Below, piece after piece: positions 9,889 to 17,964 of a DNA stretch of 64,000 nt. Position 1 is the first letter of the stretch, and each line of letters begins with the position of its first letter. This DNA is from Blastocladiella emersonii ATCC 22665 (lineage: Eukaryota; Fungi; Blastocladiomycota), in the NCBI GenBank assembly GCA_025594325.1, contig JANHCV010000007.1, positions 372,001 through 436,000 of the forward strand, given 5' to 3'. Below the pieces are notes generated by a model. It was not told the origin of the DNA. It worked only from the letters and a program-made list of their open reading frames with translations, and did no database searches. Both the position numbers and the translations under genes were made by a program.

Positions 9889-10740
9889 TCACTCGCACAT
9901 GTCCCCGTCGTTGCAACGAGTGCGGAACGCTGCGAACTCGGCCGCGACGGCCGCCGCCCTTGCCTCCGCAACACGGACTCGGTCCTCGGCCGCGGCGATC
10001 GCCATGCGCAGGTCCGCGACGTCGCGCTCCAGCTCGGCCATGGCCGCCGCGGCGACGACGGACGGAGGCGCAATGTACCCGTCGGCCGGGATCAGCCCGG
10101 ATCGCGGGACGCGCGGCGGCGGGCGCGGGTGGCGCTCGCGGACCAGCGCGCGTTCTGCGGCGTCGCGCTCGGCGTGAGCGTGGCACAGCTGAAGACGCTT
10201 CGTCTCGTTGTCGAGCTCGAGCTTGGACACGCGCGCGCGGAGGGCCAAGAGATCGGATTCGAGGGAACGGAGCGCCGCGGGCTGATCTGTGTCACGCGCG
10301 GCGGCGGGCGGCGGCGTGGCGGCGGGAGCGGGGTCCGTCAGCTCGAACGCGGCGAGGTTGGAGGAGAGCTGGTCGAAGCCTGAGTCGGCGTCGAGGTTGC
10401 GGGTGGCATCAACATTGCGCGGGATCTCGGTGGTCGTGGTGCTGACCGCTGACGAGCCCGACTTGGTGTCCACAGCCGCGTCCCACGCAACATCAGAGCC
10501 GCGACCACGCTGGGCGACGCTCGAGGTCGGCGACGAGAGGTATCGGCCGATTTTGATGACCTCGCCAGCGACGGCAGACGGGTGCGGCGAGCTGCTGACC
10601 GGCGAGTCACCGTCCTCATACTCGCGTCGGTGGTAGCCGTCGTCCTCGTCGTCCGACGACCCGATCAGGTCGCACGCAGCGACGACCTGCGCCACGGCAA
10701 AGTCGGGCGTCGTGGCGAGTTTGGACGTCGATGCGTTCAT
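9889..10740 (-). CDS. Hypothetical protein, Ser/acidic low-complexity N-half and C-terminal coiled coil
   Basis: ORF 9889..10752 has core-like codon usage. Probable start is MNAST at 10740. Heptads include LRSLESDLLALRARVSKLELD and MAELERDVADLRMAIAAAEDRV. Confidence 0.7.
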   Translation of the reverse strand: MNASTSKLATTPDFAVAQVVAACDLIGSSDDEDDGYHRREYEDGDSPVSSSPHPSAVAGEVIKIGRYLSSPTSSVAQRGRGSDVAWDAAVDTKSGSSAVSTTTTEIPRNVDATRNLDADSGFDQLSSNLAAFELTDPAPAATPPPAAARDTDQPAALRSLESDLLALRARVSKLELDNETKRLQLCHAHAERDAAERALVRERHPRPPPRVPRSGLIPADGYIAPPSVVAAAAMAELERDVADLRMAIAAAEDRVRVAEARAAAVAAEFAAFRTRCNDGDMCE

Positions 10741-11413
10741 GGCCAGATACATGCAGCGGGCAAGCTTGAGCTGGAGAGAGAGCGGGAGCCCGCGGTGAAC
10801 TGGGTCGGCTGCCTTGAACTCTGCGCGCGCGGTCGGTTTGCAACTGCTGCACGAACGCCGGCAGCAACACCACGCGCGCGAGTGGACGCTTGCTCGACAT
10901 CCTGGCCCGCATGGGCTCGCGAAGTGACCGCGGGCCGTTACATCACAGGCGATGAATTAGAAGCTTATCGCGCCGAGAGCGGACAGTGCGGCGGTGGACA
11001 GACGGATTGAAGAACGCGTGGTTCATAAGCGCGTGACCACCCGAAACAAACCCTCGACCTCCTCGTCGAATTCCTCCCAAACAACGAAGATCGCTCACAT
11101 GTAAGAGAATGTGACTCGGTGCAACAGTTTTGTTCGTCGCATGTGAGACCGGCCAGTGAGATGTTGCTAGACTTTACGTGCGCGGTTCGTGCAGCTCTCA
11201 GGCGAGGTTTTCGGTTCAGCAATTTGCCAGGGCCTGGCCACCCCGTGGATCAGAGCGAGCGATGCAGAAACGTCTCGCAGTAAACTATCATTTAAGAAGG
11301 CTACGAGCTGGCCATCGGATTCAAACAGTACAACAAGACTTCACCGCCTGCTCTCCGTTCCTCCTTGAACCCGCCAGCGTGATGCCCTGGACCTGCTTGC
11401 TCTTGTGACTCGC

Positions 11414-11734
11414 TTACGAGATGCCGCCAGCAACGCCGCCGGCCGCAAGGTCGAGCGGGGTGATGGCCGACGAGATACCGCCCGCAACGCCGCCGGCTGC
11501 AAGGTCGAGCGGCGTGACGATGGACGAGATGCCGCCAGCGACGCCGCCCGCAGCCAGATCGAGCGGGGTGACGGACGAGATGCCACCTGCGACGCCGCCA
11601 GCGGCCAGGTCGCGAGGAGCGAGATTCGAGTCAAGCTTGGGAACCGGGACGGGGCGGGCCTGGATGGCGCTGGCCAGGGCGAGGCAGAGGGCGAGGATGA
11701 CGACAAAGTTGCGCATAGCGATCTTGAGCTTCAT
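11414..11734 (-). CDS. Small secreted protein with 4 tandem DLAAGGVAGGIS repeats (candidate peptide precursor)
   Basis: Signal peptide (MRNFVVILALCLALASAIQA), short pro-region ending APR, then 4 identical 12-aa repeats with synonymous-only differences and short S(V/IV/AI)TPL linkers. Confidence 0.85.
   Translation of the reverse strand: MKLKIAMRNFVVILALCLALASAIQARPVPVPKLDSNLAPRDLAAGGVAGGISSVTPLDLAAGGVAGGISSIVTPLDLAAGGVAGGISSAITPLDLAAGGVAGGIS
11417..11611 (-). repeat. Coding tandem repeat, 4 x 36-bp core separated by 15-18-nt linkers
   Basis: Core GAYCTKGCNGCNGGCGGCGTYGCNGGYGGYATCTCG read directly from the four copies. Confidence 0.95.
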
Positions 11735-12787
11735 GAGCGACAGAGCTGGAGGGATGAGAGAGCGGGGATGTGTTGCGCGCTCGGCATCGCAAGTTGCTTG
11801 TGGCGACGCACCCTGATCTGGAGTTCAAGTGACGTGACACCGGTTCGAGGTATCTCTGCGAAATGATTAACGCGAAGAGACCTAACACCGTTGTCCACCG
11901 CGCGCGACTGCGTATGCGAGGCCTGGTTGATCGCCAATTCTTTCGACGAATCAACGAATCAACGATTCAGCGCAGCATGAATTGACTCAGAACTCTGGTC
12001 CTGAACCTGATCAGGTACGCGGATCACAAACTGCTGCACGAACGACAAGCGAGAGTCGCAGCGGCGTTCTCCGTTTCCGCGAGAAGGTTACTGCCCGCAC
12101 ATCAACACTCTGGCCGCGGGAGGGGCGTGGAAGCGCGGACATGGACATGCTTGATGTCGAGGCGAACGTGTTTTCGTCCGAGCGCACGGCTGGACGCACA
12201 ATACTTGCTTCATAACTGCGGTCTCGTCCAACAATGCGTGTGTATCTGGTATTCCGTGTCATCCGCATTGTGAAACATCCGCGTGAACAGGGCGAACTGG
12301 TGGCCGCGCCTGGATCGGACTTGTCTCACACGTGAGACGCGCTGCGCCACTCACGTGTACGCCGTCTCGCAGGTCGTGATCAGCCCCGAGTTTTGCCTTT
12401 CGTCGCCGCGCACTTGTGGGCGACTGCAAACTGCGTGCACTGCGCGATCCTGCCTCCCCAGTCATGTAACGCAGACATCGGAAGTCCGGTCGGTGTCACG
12501 CCGAACGGTCGCAACCTCGTGTGGCCCAGCTGTGCCCGAGCGCCGGCTAAACCCGAAACGGGGAGCGCCGATCCGAGTGCGGATGCACCACTCGCTTGCC
12601 AACGTCGCTTTATCTGGGTTACCGCAGCGCGCAGCAACGGGCCGCAGCTGCGCTTTTCACGGCGTTCCGCCTGGCGTTGTTTCGGGGAGAGCATAAAACC
12701 TGCCCGCGAGTCGCGGCTCGTCTGCGCTCCCGAAGCTCATCCTTCACTCTCCCTTCAACCTAGAGTAGAGGCGTGGCAGCACCTACG

Positions 12788-14410
12788 ATGCGTCGCACCA
12801 CCACCACACGCCCGATCCTCGCGCTCCTCGCCCTCGCCGTGGCGCTCGCCACGCTCTCGGCCGTCGAGGCTCGTCCCGCGCCGGCCGCGGCCAGCTACGG
12901 CAGCGAGACGGGCGTCGGCAACGCCTTCAACATCGATTTCTCGTGCGACAAGGACGTCAAGTCGTGCAAGCGCATCGAGAAGGCTGTCAAGGGCGCCGCC
13001 CAGCGGATCGCCAGCGAGTTCAAGTTCCGTCGCACTGTGGTACGCTTCGCCCGTTTCACCCACTCACGCTTCGAGCAAGCTCTCACCTTTATCTCCTCAC
13101 GCTTCTAGAACCTCAACATCGGTCTGTTCCAGCCGTGCGGCTCGTCGCAGCCGGATCCCGCGTGCGCGTAGTCCGAGGTCGACGGGTACGCGTACCCGAC
13201 GCAGCGCTTCCCCGTGATCCACAAGGACGACGGCGAGACGTACCTGTACCCGACGGCGGTGCTCAAGCAGCTCGACTTTGCCGCCATCGACCAGGGCAAG
13301 GTCAAGTGGCCCGCGTACGACGTGGTGGCGCGGTTCAACGCGCAGCGCGACTGGTGGTTCGCCGACGACAAGGCGGCCATGCGCCCTGACCAGCGCGACC
13401 TCGAGGCCACGGCGCTGCACGAGCTCCTGCACGGGCTCGGGTTCGGCGACGACACGCTCATGTCGTGGCAGCTTGACGCGCGTGCCCCGATCCTCCTCCC
13501 CTTTTACGACTCGACGCCGCCCAGCGTCCAGCCCGCGCCCGAGCAGTCCGAGTCCACGGACCGCCCCTTCAACCAGCAGGTCTTCTACCGCCTGACCCAG
13601 CCGACGATCTGGAGCCGGTTCCTCGTCGTCAATGGTACCTCCGTCGCCGATTTCGTCAAGCCGATTCGCGCCGCGTTTGGCGCGGTCGTCGCCGCCAAGA
13701 AGATCACGCCCACCGTCACCTCGCCCGACAACGGCTACTCGCCGCGCGCCGCCTTTGACGCCATCACGGCCGACGCGACCGCGTACAAGACCATGTCCCG
13801 CCTGTACGTCCTCGGCACGCGCCCGGGCAACCTCGAGTTCCGCGCCGGTGCGTGGCCACCGGGTTCGCCCGCCGACAAGCCGCTCACGCTCGAGACGGGT
13901 CTGCGGCCGTTCGTCCGCGGCTCGTCGGTCGTACACACGGCCGTGGCCGCCAACGCGACGGCCGACTTTATCATGACGTACAAGCCCTCGGGCCTGTCGC
14001 TCGACAAGACCATCGCCAAGGTCAAGGCGCCCAAGTCGGGCATCGGCAAGGCGACCAAGGACGCAATGCACGCCATCGGCTACACGGCGGCCGGCGCCAA
14101 GGAGTTCAAGTCGGTGGCCAAGTTTGCCGAGATTGACCCCAGGGCTCTCGTCCAGGGCGCCGTCAAGGGCAAGGCCGTGCGCGACAACACGGTATCGGTC
14201 GCGGCGAGTACCACCGGCACAGCTGCGCCCGTTCTCGCGTCGACCGCCGAGTCCGCTGCGCCGACCGAGTCGTCCTCGGCCCTCGGTCTCGGTGCCGGTG
14301 GTGTCGCTGGCGGTATCTCGGCCGCGGCCCTCGTCGCCTTTGTTGCCCGCCGCTCGCGCAAAGCGGCGACGGAGGCCGAGGATCCCGAGTACAACACGCT
14401 CAACGCGTGA
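12788..14410 (+). CDS. Secreted, C-terminally membrane-anchored HExxH zinc-metalloprotease-like protein; in-frame TAG at 13169-13171
   Basis: Signal peptide, then a phase-0 intron 13040-13108 (GTACGC..CTCAC..CTAG). Contains ATALHELLHGLGF, an S/T/A-rich stalk, a TM helix and an RRSRK stop-transfer. Exon 2 reads NLNIGLFQPCGSSQPDPACA*SEVDGYAYP in frame. Confidence 0.85.
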
Positions 14411-14579: not shown

Positions 14580-16396
14580 ATGCATGTAACCACCATAAAT
14601 CTATCCAACTTGCCGCAAAATGTTATGGAGGATGTCCTGAAGCTGATTGCACGGCCGTGCTCGTCTATCGTGGCGACTTCGCGGGAACTCGCACACGCAG
14701 GGCGTCCGACCAGTTTGATCGCGCACTGGGCCGAGCGCGTCGTCCACGACACAGCGCGCGAGGTTTATGCTAGCAAGCCACGGCAGGCCAGTAGATTTCT
14801 GTCCCCGCTCGCAATCTATCTCGAACGCCTGGTTTGCGGTCGTCGTTCAAGCCAATCCATGCCACCCAACACACTTGTGGGCGAGCTTGCGCACCCGTTC
14901 ACCGAGGCTATAGTGAAACGCTCTGTTCGAGCGGTCCGGCTCTCAGTGCACTCGGCAAAACCGTTTCCAGTCCAACTCGATGCGAGTGTGGCCTCTCGGC
15001 TAGCGCGGCTGCGCCAGCCAAGCATGCCTCGCACGGAAGGCCCGGCCATCGATGCATTGTTACTTGTCATCTTCTTTCTCTACGTCGGCGAACTCCCACG
15101 CATGCAGTCCCTGCTCGATGACCTCATCTCAGCCGACCCCTCACTACTTACACACCAAACACGGATCTCCAGCCTTGCATCGATTTTTCTCGACCAGGAA
15201 GTCCATAACTACCAATTCGTTGGCATTGGCCCCGAAAGACTTGCTACCCAAACCACGTTCGCGACCTATCTTTCCTCCCTTGCCCTAATTGAGTGGGACG
15301 CGGACGCGCTCAACCGGCTCCTTCAACCCCAATACCAAGTCGACATCGACCTTTGCGTCAAATTTGCGTGGTCGATCTCGAATACCATGCTCATTCGTCT
15401 CAACGCCGAAGGAGCTCTCGATGCCATCACGCCTCGCATAGCCCAAATCCTGGAGTTGCTCAGATCTCACGGCTGGGTTGACACTGACCTTTTGCTGGGT
15501 CAGGCATGTGCCCGCCGCTTGACGCCTGACCTCCTCAAGCATCTCTTCTCGACATACTACTCAACGATCGGGCCCCTCACCACTGACCACACCGTCCGTG
15601 AGTTCTTTATCCGCTATCTTACTTCTTGGGTCAAGGCACCGCTTGATCTCGATCTCGATCTGCTGACAGCCGCAGCAGAAATCGGGCTCGTCTCGGACAA
15701 TATGTGGGCCACGTTACTTGGTGAGTTGGCCGAGGACGCAGCATGGTGGAAAGTTGCCCAAGTCGCACAACTGCCGGGTGCAGTCCGGGACTGGGACTTC
15801 GTGCTCACCGCAAGTACGTCACTGATTTATCTAAGCCCGACGACGCACAGCGACTAACCCGTAGTAAAGCCATACTCCGTAGCCCGCGGAAGAGCGTTAG
15901 ATTCGATCGCCCGTTCCAACTCGCTGGAGAAGTGCTACCGCAGCCGTTCGACGTCTTCACAGACGAGGTCCTGGAACATGTCACCTTCTCCTCAGGTCTC
16001 CTTCCTTCGCTTCGACTCCTTCGCGAGCGCGGGGCCGAATTCCCGTCCAGCCTTGACCTCCTCCAGCACATCGAGGAGCGCGATTGGCCCAAAGAGGAGT
16101 TCACCACGAAATCCCTGGCTATCGCATCTTTACTAACTTCGGTACTCAACGACGAGGACTCAACCGAGCACGCTCTCACATTCCTTGCTGGTGACGGCGA
16201 CACCGCTGATCTGAGCACGATTCACTCCCGCGTTATGGGTCATTTCGATTGTCTCGCAACGCTCGACAACCCGGCGAACCAACGTTACGCGTCCCACGTT
16301 CTTGAAATGGTCCCACTCCATCCCCACGCGCGGGCTGGGACCAAGCCGTGGACGTACGCCGCCGACCTGATTCAGCAACGGTTTGCTGAGGTGTAG
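14580..16396 (+). CDS. Hypothetical helical protein with F-box-like N-terminus, probably one gene split over two frames
   Basis: ORF 14580..15857 starts NLSNLPQNVMEDVLKL and overlaps ORF 15743..16396. The candidate intron 15814-15864 does not restore the frame. Confidence 0.5.
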
Positions 16397-16677: not shown

Positions 16678-17964
16678 TTGCATGAACTTGCTGAAACCAT
16701 GAAAGTACACTCCATTATTGAACGAATCCTTGTCTTCGCCGTAAAGGCGACCGACCCGGCCGACTTGTCGTCGCTCGCCCAGTACTCCCGTGTTCTCCCG
16801 CGCTCTGCTGCGCGACTCGTGAGTCAGGCCATCGAAAAGCATGTCTCAACCCGGTTACACTTGGAATATGCGGCCGAGCACGGCCCGCCCCAACTACTGG
16901 AGCTCCGTCGGGCTTCTGGCAGCACTTGTAACCTTTCTGTGATTCGCACACATTCTCAGCGTACGCCTGATGGCAACCATCCGGCGGCGTATGCGCTGTC
17001 GGACGCGACGCTCTCTTCATCACACAAGCGGCCCCTCCCGCTGCCGTCCACCATGCTCTCGCCGTTCGACTCATCTGACGTGGCGTCGCTGCATCTGGCG
17101 AAGCGACGTGCGCTTGGAGATGCCAGTACCGTGACCTCTGCAGCTAAGCGGCTAGTGCAGTTCCAAACTTACAAGCGCAAGGTACTGGCCGAACTGCAGC
17201 TCGAGGAGGACCATCTCATGCTCGAGGTGTTCAACGAGTGGAAGCAGGTCGAGCAGCAGCGACTTGCGGCGCGAAAGCAATACGACGCTACCAAGGAGGA
17301 GTTCGACCTGCTAAGAGGCAAGGTTGAAGCGCTCAAGCGAGAGAAAGCCGAACTTGAGGCCCAGAGAAAGAAGTCCGAGCGAACGGCGCCTTGTCAGCGG
17401 GCGAGGGGACTCGAAAAACTGCAGCAGCAGACTCAGCAGCTTCTCGCGCCGCCGCAGCCGCAGAAGCAGCAGCAACATGCGACGGTCGCGTTCGCGCTTG
17501 ATAACTCGATGCAGGCGCAGCCCCGCGCGTCTCAATCGATTCCGCTGTATTTGATGCACGGAGGAGCGCCGCACATGGCGAGTGGCTCCACAAACCCGAG
17601 TCAGCAGCAGTACGCGACGGCCTCGTACATGTTCGGCTACCAGGCGCAGCCGGAGCAGCTCACGTCGCCGTCAACCTCGGTTTCCGACGCGTATCCGCAC
17701 CAGGGAGCGCGGTTCGAGCCGATCCGCGGCAGGAACACGGCGCGTCTCTCGCTGCCGCAGCAGCAACCGCATCCCGCTCCAACCTCATCTCCGCCCGACG
17801 GCTCAATGCAGGCGAATCAGCTCATTTCGTCGTCGCTCCCGCTGCCCGCGACCTATACGCACACAGGAGCGCAGCTTATTGCGAGCGGCTCCACAAACCT
17901 GCCTCAGCAGCAGCAAGATTTGTTCTCACTCATTGGCGCGGATTTCCTCAACAACTTTCGTTGA
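16678..17964 (+). CDS. Chimeric-looking protein: LRR-family N-terminal domain fused to a coiled-coil and Gln-rich region
   Basis: Residues ~8-80 (IIERILVFAVKATDPADLSSLAQYSRV) align by eye with the N-termini of the LRR genes at 2856, 20243 and 53832. The remainder is coiled-coil plus Q-rich, with an internal repeat GAxxxASGSTNxxQQQ. Confidence 0.6.
   Translation: MHELAETMKVHSIIERILVFAVKATDPADLSSLAQYSRVLPRSAARLVSQAIEKHVSTRLHLEYAAEHGPPQLLELRRASGSTCNLSVIRTHSQRTPDGNHPAAYALSDATLSSSHKRPLPLPSTMLSPFDSSDVASLHLAKRRALGDASTVTSAAKRLVQFQTYKRKVLAELQLEEDHLMLEVFNEWKQVEQQRLAARKQYDATKEEFDLLRGKVEALKREKAELEAQRKKSERTAPCQRARGLEKLQQQTQQLLAPPQPQKQQQHATVAFALDNSMQAQPRASQSIPLYLMHGGAPHMASGSTNPSQQQYATASYMFGYQAQPEQLTSPSTSVSDAYPHQGARFEPIRGRNTARLSLPQQQPHPAPTSSPPDGSMQANQLISSSLPLPATYTHTGAQLIASGSTNLPQQQQDLFSLIGADFLNNFR

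Follow-up and report, generated by a model that had tools for sequence, protein, structure and literature searches.

A predicted secreted repeat-peptide gene, possibly derived from the neighbouring metalloprotease gene, in Blastocladiella emersonii

Fungal Kex2-processed repeat proteins (KEPs) and alpha-factor-type precursors consist of a signal peptide, a leader and tandem invariant cores (PMC7329392, PMC6339444). We describe here an arrangement of this kind in a 64,000-nucleotide stretch of the genome of the blastoclad Blastocladiella emersonii ATCC 22665 (contig JANHCV010000007.1, positions 372,001 to 436,000; this stretch is referred to as the window, and positions are given in its coordinates). 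On the minus strand, at 11414–11734, an unannotated open reading frame (ORF) of 106 codons plus a TAA stop is, to judge from its sequence, probably a real orphan gene encoding a secreted repeat protein or peptide precursor. It lies head-to-head with a gene for a putative metalloprotease, with which it very probably shares ancestry for two short segments, the signal peptide and a glycine-rich motif in the membrane anchor of the protease. Like KEPs and alpha-factor precursors, the small protein combines a signal peptide, a short leader and at least three tandem invariant cores, and selection appears to act on the cores while the spacers vary. Unlike KEPs, it has no Lys-Arg or Arg-Arg sites beside the cores, where Ser/Thr-Pro spacers are found instead, its cores, rich in Gly and Ala, are similar to a transmembrane helix, the host is a blastoclad, and no homologue is known.

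The small protein reads as a basic n-region, a 12-residue h-region, an AIQA/RP junction, a 15-residue leader and four units. The predicted signal peptide (residues 1–26; 11657–11734, minus strand) reaches a 19-residue Kyte-Doolittle mean of 2.11, and its c-region ends in AIQA just before RP; it matches the signal peptide of the protease and coincides with the sole confident helix (residues 2–25) of a single-sequence AlphaFold model, whose predicted local distance difference test score (pLDDT) outside the signal peptide is 51. The four-repeat array (11417–11612, minus strand) was evident in the sequence, in the inverted-repeat search and in Tandem Repeats Finder, which reported 3.7 copies of period 54 at 11416–11612. 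Each unit of 17–18 residues contains the invariant core DLAAGGVAGGIS; the four copies, R1 to R4, start at residues 42, 59, 77 and 95 (11576–11611, 11525–11560, 11471–11506 and 11417–11452, minus strand), are joined by the linkers SVTP, SIVTP and SAITP, and are followed by the stop codon directly after the fourth. Within AAGGVAGGIS both glycines of the first GG pair have a glycine at i+4, a GxxxG pattern that Ala5, Ala9 and Ser13 extend. One Asp and one Pro recur every 17–18 residues, and the highest 19-residue Kyte-Doolittle mean of the mature protein is 1.36 (1.87 in the protease anchor), below the usual threshold for a membrane span. The mature protein contains no dibasic pair (KR/RR).

Is this reading frame a gene? 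The strongest evidence lies in the repeats themselves. Among the four 12-codon cores we count at least 12 substitutions, 12 synonymous and none nonsynonymous, all of them at third positions (P ~1e-6 for random point changes), a pattern that supports purifying selection. At third positions the repeats agree in about half of their codons (R3 and R4, at 10/13, are the exception), which is near the level estimated from genome codon bias. Third positions are thus close to saturation between the repeats, and likewise between the repeats and the protease anchor, which argues that the array is old and that each copy has been maintained by selection, not by homogenisation. With six genes of the protease family as the codon-usage reference (their own scores range from 0.41 to 0.75 bits per codon), the sense frame has a log-odds score of +0.47 bits per codon, whereas both antisense values are negative (-0.30 and -0.16). 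The frame could instead be non-functional, either a fragment in decay or a minisatellite left open by chance. That it is unannotated and has neither a homologue nor transcript evidence would fit such an origin, as would the abundance of 100-codon open frames in this GC-rich DNA; however, the confinement of all 12 substitutions to third positions, the gene-like codon usage and a frame that starts at an intact ATG, encodes a signal peptide and stops directly after the fourth unit speak against it, and we regard a non-functional frame as very improbable.

Several observations nevertheless weigh against the interpretation as a gene. An antisense frame whose third positions coincide with those of the sense frame (ORF 11421–11816, plus strand) is equally invariant, so that the choice of frame is decided only by codon usage and the signal peptide. 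The TAA stop sits within tcGTAAGCg, a possible 5' splice donor (11412–11417, minus strand). The case is also built on one genome. The exact small protein, with either of two start codons, is absent from 15 billion public sequences; a word-based homologue search at E up to 10 returned no homologue and one unrelated match (E 2.6), Pfam gave no match at E up to 1, and tblastn found none in plasmids with the low-complexity filter on. A further exon beyond the GTAAGC donor was considered and is not evident, the next 660 nt having a low GC content at third codon positions and stops in all frames. The assembly was built from PacBio HiFi reads with Illumina polishing and was annotated ab initio with funannotate (PMC9730499), and the ab initio character of that annotation accounts for its having missed a 106-codon gene.

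What connects the small gene to its neighbour? The start codons, 11734 on the minus strand and 12788 on the plus strand, face away from each other across an intergenic region of 1,053 bp (11735–12787), in which blastn and the inverted-repeat search detected no repeat and no similarity to other loci. The original prediction described a divergent pair about 1 kb apart, an HExxH protease as the neighbour and a repeat that agrees with the start of the protease transmembrane helix at 11 of 13 residues. These descriptions were borne out, including the coordinates and the sequences: LGLGAGGVAGGIS (14282–14320, plus strand) is identical to R2, R3 and R4 at 11/13 positions and to R1 at 10/13, and the two amino-acid differences from R2 are each due to a single base (GAT/GGT and GCT/GGT). 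In the inverted-repeat search of the region, repeat/anchor and signal/signal pairs take the first three places, and blastn between the two genes gives its best matches in the same segments, which are collinear in gene orientation. A resemblance between the two N-termini had also been proposed; the pattern given for it, ILAL.LALA..A..ARP.P, matches neither protein literally, but a gapped alignment upholds the likeness. The Smith-Waterman score of the N-terminus of the small protein against that of the protease, 57, is the best among 108 signal-like N-termini drawn from ~260 kb (next 40) and also the highest among 146 N-termini of the protease family, where the next value is 47, from a member with ARPAP, and the mean is 20.9 (standard deviation 5.4).

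The motif is rare in the genome (32.65 Mb in 21 contigs). Back-translated AGGxAGGIS has seven matches, namely the four repeats, the protease anchor and two ADP/ATP carrier genes, whereas the reversed-pattern control has none. Two of the four loci that bear the motif are thus 2.7 kb apart and, because there are three other such loci in 32.65 Mb, the chance that one of them lies within 3 kb is ~5e-4. Back-translated GGVAGGI also has seven matches, the four repeats, the anchor and two cytosolic linkers that lack the following Ser. Taken together, adjacency, the collinear similarity blocks and the best-ranked N-termini make it very probable, as far as sequence comparison can tell, that the signal peptide and the anchor motif have a common ancestry in the two genes. 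The direction would be from protease to peptide, because the protease family is old (253 representatives) and because the closest paralogue of the protease, P0002, also has GGVxGG where its tail begins. The tail of P0002 in fact shares GGVxGG..AA.L.AF with the protease anchor, which makes the anchor appear to be an original part of the protease lineage.

Based on these observations, we propose that a partial inverted local duplication of the protease gene may have preserved nothing but the end with the signal peptide and the first part of the anchor, that the anchor fragment would then have been amplified four times, and that each repeat copy would since have been held constant by purifying selection. 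We consider this origin of the small gene to be evenly balanced between right and wrong. The near saturation of third positions indicates that the duplication is not recent. As in genes born by partial duplication, two ends of the parent appear to be kept and the middle lost, the copy is inverted beside the parent, and it seems to have acquired a constraint of its own. Unlike in clear partial duplicates, only ~60 nt and ~40 nt of similarity remain, so that location and rank statistics, in place of an alignable duplicate, are what point to this origin. Beyond these two short blocks blastn detects no DNA similarity between the small gene and the protease gene, and this counts against the proposal. 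The pairing itself is not repeated elsewhere in the family: within 6–8 kb of four B. emersonii paralogue loci and two Allomyces loci there is no ORF that mimics the protease tail or carries repeats, and neither the homologue search nor a metagenome motif scan yielded an orthologue of the small gene. Comparison of gene neighbourhoods, which the original prediction had named as a check, therefore points to a one-off event.

The two ADP/ATP carrier genes offer a second possible source of the repeat. In the metagenome scan with back-translated DLAAGGVAGGI, 17 of 19 matches were N-termini of mitochondrial ADP/ATP carriers (one was confirmed by a Mito_carr match), and these carriers of other eukaryotes read exactly DLAAGGVAGGIS. 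Two GC-rich metagenome contigs, L042 and L052, showed DFAAGGVAGGI in a 388-codon frame that appears to be off-frame or of low complexity and is unrelated to carriers. At helix 1 the B. emersonii carrier genes read LDLAAGGTAGGISKTVVAP and IDLAAGGTAGGISKTVVAP, both of which contain LDLAAGGTAGGIS. When the repeat unit LDLAAGGVAGGIS-SIVTP is aligned with LDLAAGGTAGGISKTVVAP, 12 of 13 core residues and 14 of 19 with the linker are identical, and the Smith-Waterman score of the unit is 64 against the carrier and 52 against the protease anchor. At the DNA level the repeat is equally similar to both (42 nt, 81%). These comparisons tell against a derivation from the protease, and third-position identities do not distinguish carrier from protease as the donor.

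One could accordingly imagine that ~57 nt of carrier helix 1 were captured ectopically and then amplified, in which case the resemblance to the anchor would be secondary, being due to chance, to an insertion guided by microhomology or to later gene conversion between neighbours. Besides the higher identity and score and the exact core in the carriers of other eukaryotes, this account draws on the Asp, the second Ala and the linker Pro of the repeat, which are carrier-like and not protease-like, and on the carrier N-terminus being second among the weak matches of the small protein to proteins of its own genome (E 0.06). It leaves unexplained, however, why the repeat lies 2.7 kb from another motif locus (p ~5e-4) and why the N-terminus is the best match of 254. 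The repeat has Val, as does the protease, where the carrier has Thr; no flanking DNA of the small gene resembles the carrier loci (or, outside the two short blocks, the protease gene), and the protease tail looks vertically inherited, as P0002 indicates. Like carrier helix 1 (PF00153, at the start of the first repeat), which reads LDLAAGG(T/V)AGGIS, the repeat has a Pro at the end of the linker; unlike the carrier, the small protein lacks a Mito_carr domain, the Px[DE]xx[KR] signature and 100-residue repeats, and has a signal peptide of the endoplasmic reticulum type. The repeat unit ends in PLDLAA, without the basic residue of the carrier signature. On balance a carrier origin seems unlikely to us. 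The carrier match does affect the idea, put forward originally, that the repeat specifically copies the transmembrane motif of the protease. Since the motif also occurs in an unlinked, unrelated carrier, and matches better there, the repeat is not a specific copy of the protease, and the better match likewise contests the proposed inverted derivation, which adjacency, the collinear blocks and the N-termini favour. By its sequence distribution the shared motif is rare without being peculiar to the protease; it is a motif of general use in helix packing and forms the conserved packing face of carrier helix 1. The suspicion that it might be common in unrelated transmembrane anchors is thus justified in kind, by carrier helix 1, but not in number, with seven matches genome-wide. 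The carrier serves as a caution that a short Gly-rich identity between neighbours is by itself no proof of molecular mimicry.

The existence of the motif in the carrier also shows that it can occur independently. In a GC-rich genome with its wealth of Gly and Ala codons, three unrelated sequences might have come by convergence to a Gly/Ala small-xxx-small motif of helix packing, with the N-terminal likeness reflecting nothing but the usual Ala/Leu composition of signal peptides. In favour of this, the matching stretch is brief and low in complexity, AGGVAGG strings show no enrichment in the genome (13 against 28 for the reversed-pattern control), and unrelated signal-like N-termini reach a score of 53 against the protease. 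Microcin V, too, contains AAGGVAGG (PMC9954637). As a resemblance to the small protein, microcin V and other glycine-zipper membrane peptides are hydrophobic, uncharged and rich in small residues. Microcin V differs in being bacterial, single-copy, 88 residues long and equipped with another type of leader, and the eight-residue resemblance is no evidence of relationship. Yet convergence does not account for the adjacency (p ~5e-4), for the two collinear blocks being the best local similarities of the region, or for an N-terminal score of 57 where the family mean is 20.9. Nor does it explain why R2 and the anchor differ by single bases while retaining a rare third-position T. Six of the 13 anchor-motif codons end in T, whereas elsewhere in the ORF T makes up 6.3% of third positions (post hoc P 7e-5), and five of the six Gly codons are GGT. 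We therefore judge a complete lack of shared ancestry to be improbable, and a partial duplication of the protease gene remains our preferred explanation. P0002 likewise uses rare Gly codons at the place homologous to the anchor motif.

What might the product do? In the scheme that we favour, it would enter the secretory pathway, lose its signal peptide and act outside the cell, in the form of either a small repeat protein or four ~17-residue peptides. The cores may pack against each other or against membranes, as the motif does in carrier helix 1 and microcin V; from these other settings, helix packing or membrane association is a likely property of the motif. As a working mechanism we suggest a secreted, Kex2-independent, multi-copy Gly-zipper peptide or protein, whose link to the protease would be one of ancestry, perhaps with a shared promoter, rather than of molecular interaction.

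The original prediction proposed a closer functional bond. The secreted repeats could be a dedicated substrate of the neighbouring protease, cut once per unit at a site copied from the stalk-anchor junction, or a decoy that competes for shedding or self-association. In detail, a Pro-Leu-Asp/Leu-Ala-Ala cut would resemble Ala-Leu-Gly/Leu-Gly-Ala in the protease, or the peptide would bind the GxxxG face of the anchor. The divergent genes have a common upstream region of 1 kb, the cores are invariant under strong selection, and the neighbour is a predicted metzincin; moreover, the precursor has no Kex2 sites, so another protease would be needed for cutting. In metzincin substrates the residue that follows the cut is usually hydrophobic. 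By analogy, PLDLAAG in the repeat and ALGLGAG in the protease resemble PLGLAG, a standard linker sensitive to matrix metalloproteinase 2 (MMP-2) (PMC11787566), and a substrate or shedding-site role is in this sense possible. Against such a coupling stand the presence of the same motif in an unrelated mitochondrial protein, the lack of a partner beside the other family members examined and the interruption of the protease frame by a TAG codon. The units are also too short and too polar to enter the bilayer as helices, which makes a decoy role within the membrane physically unlikely. We consider it doubtful, then, that the repeats serve as a dedicated substrate or decoy, and correspondingly hold out little expectation that the peptide and the juxtamembrane and anchor segment of the protease form a functional pair. 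If they did, the protease would be accompanied by a substrate or decoy fashioned from the anchor of the protease itself.

Were the small gene shown to be expressed, it would be an orphan secreted-peptide gene whose raw material can be traced to the two ends of a neighbouring gene, and a case in which a transmembrane fragment was turned into a soluble, amplified and strongly conserved module. It would also add a Kex2-independent multi-copy precursor from an early-diverging fungus. In addition, the locus brings to notice a widespread fungal metzincin family outside Pfam, and it suggests that ab initio annotation of a model genome overlooks small secreted genes.

The neighbouring gene, on the plus strand, merits description in its own right. 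Exon 1 (84 codons, 12788–13039), at which the public protein model P0001 also starts, encodes the signal peptide and a Cys-containing N-terminal segment that is kept in paralogues. Next comes an intron of 69 nt (13040–13108) that has GT..AG borders and a polypyrimidine stretch at its 3' end; paralogue proteins are uninterrupted at this point and lack the intron. Twenty codons conserved in paralogues, two Cys among them, then run into an in-frame TAG at 13169–13171 (segment 13109–13171). The open remainder of 412 codons (13172–14410 with the stop) encodes the catalytic domain, a Ser/Thr/Ala-rich stalk, the anchor and the tail; as 13172–14407 it is 100% identical to the B. emersonii ATCC 22665 protein H9P43_006087 (P0001) at NCBI. 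That public model excises a 132-nt intron and thereby drops both the TAG and the paralogue-conserved codons with their two Cys. The gene with the TAG may be a recent pseudogene or a null allele, or the codon may be read through. Exons and pieces of the protease were searched and folded separately.

The zinc motif HELLHGLGFGD lies at 13418–13450; HExxHGLGF is nearly invariant in the family, and the segment shows weak matches to the matrixin and astacin zinc helix. Further downstream (13934–13975), His255 (13934–13936) and Leu-Met267/268 (Met at 13973–13975) are nearly invariant, and by analogy with leishmanolysin His255 and Met268 are candidates for the third zinc ligand and the Met-turn. When 108 sequences are aligned, H83, E84, H87, H255 and M268 each show a conservation of at least 90%. 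An exhaustive HMMER search gathered 253 family representatives at E<=1e-3. No Pfam model, Peptidase_M8 (PF01457) included, matched the window protease at E up to 10, and four of the 108 family members had weak Peptidase_M10/M11 matches. Sequence searches of the PDB with both proteins gave nothing usable, and Foldseek with the protease model found no match in the PDB. A wide structural search with the AlphaFold model (pLDDT 90.8) placed leishmanolysin (1LML) first, with Z 7.2 over 135 residues at 18% identity, a Z of ~7 being middling, followed by MMP-2, -9, -12 and -20 and then by snapalysin, at Z 3–4.4. Conserved residues and modelled fold thus support the assignment of the neighbour as a leishmanolysin-like metzincin, a putative protease of a fungal family without a Pfam model. 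Like leishmanolysin (GP63, M8), it has HExxHxLGF, a distant conserved His and Met and a surface anchor, and most members of its family end in a hydrophobic tail resembling a glycosylphosphatidylinositol (GPI) signal. Unlike leishmanolysin, the window copy has no PF01457 match, a low sequence identity, a transmembrane anchor with a cytosolic tail, and the in-frame TAG.

The anchor (22 residues, 14282–14347), which begins with the shared motif, is the only hydrophobic span of the protein. The predicted cytosolic tail of 20 residues (14348–14407), recognized by comparison of family tails, begins with RRSRK and contains YNTL. Among the 40 family tails listed, none apart from this copy has a comparable charged tail after the hydrophobic span, and within the family GG-h-x-GG occurs in the last 60 residues only in this copy and P0002. 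The B. emersonii genome holds at least six full-length family copies (on contigs C19 and C16, and four on C11).

Four flanking ORFs, 9889–10752 on the minus strand and 14580–15857, 15743–16396 and 16678–17964 on the plus strand, had no Pfam match at E<=0.01. The first two are absent as exact sequences from the public protein collection, and their annotated models probably differ from the plain ORFs. One of the two carrier copies, L054 (G000:C2:1321667-1322640), also has an in-frame TAG, in the signature ERVKLLL*TQDS, where the copy on contig C1 has Gln. The in-frame TAGs in the protease and in this carrier raised the idea that TAG is reassigned in this genome, which was rejected: among 88 Mito_carr matches, three contain TAG and two contain TGA. 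Carrier copy L054 uses GGT for one of its 34 Gly codons, against 17 of 30 in the C1 copy, and this duplicate may be decaying or expressed only weakly.

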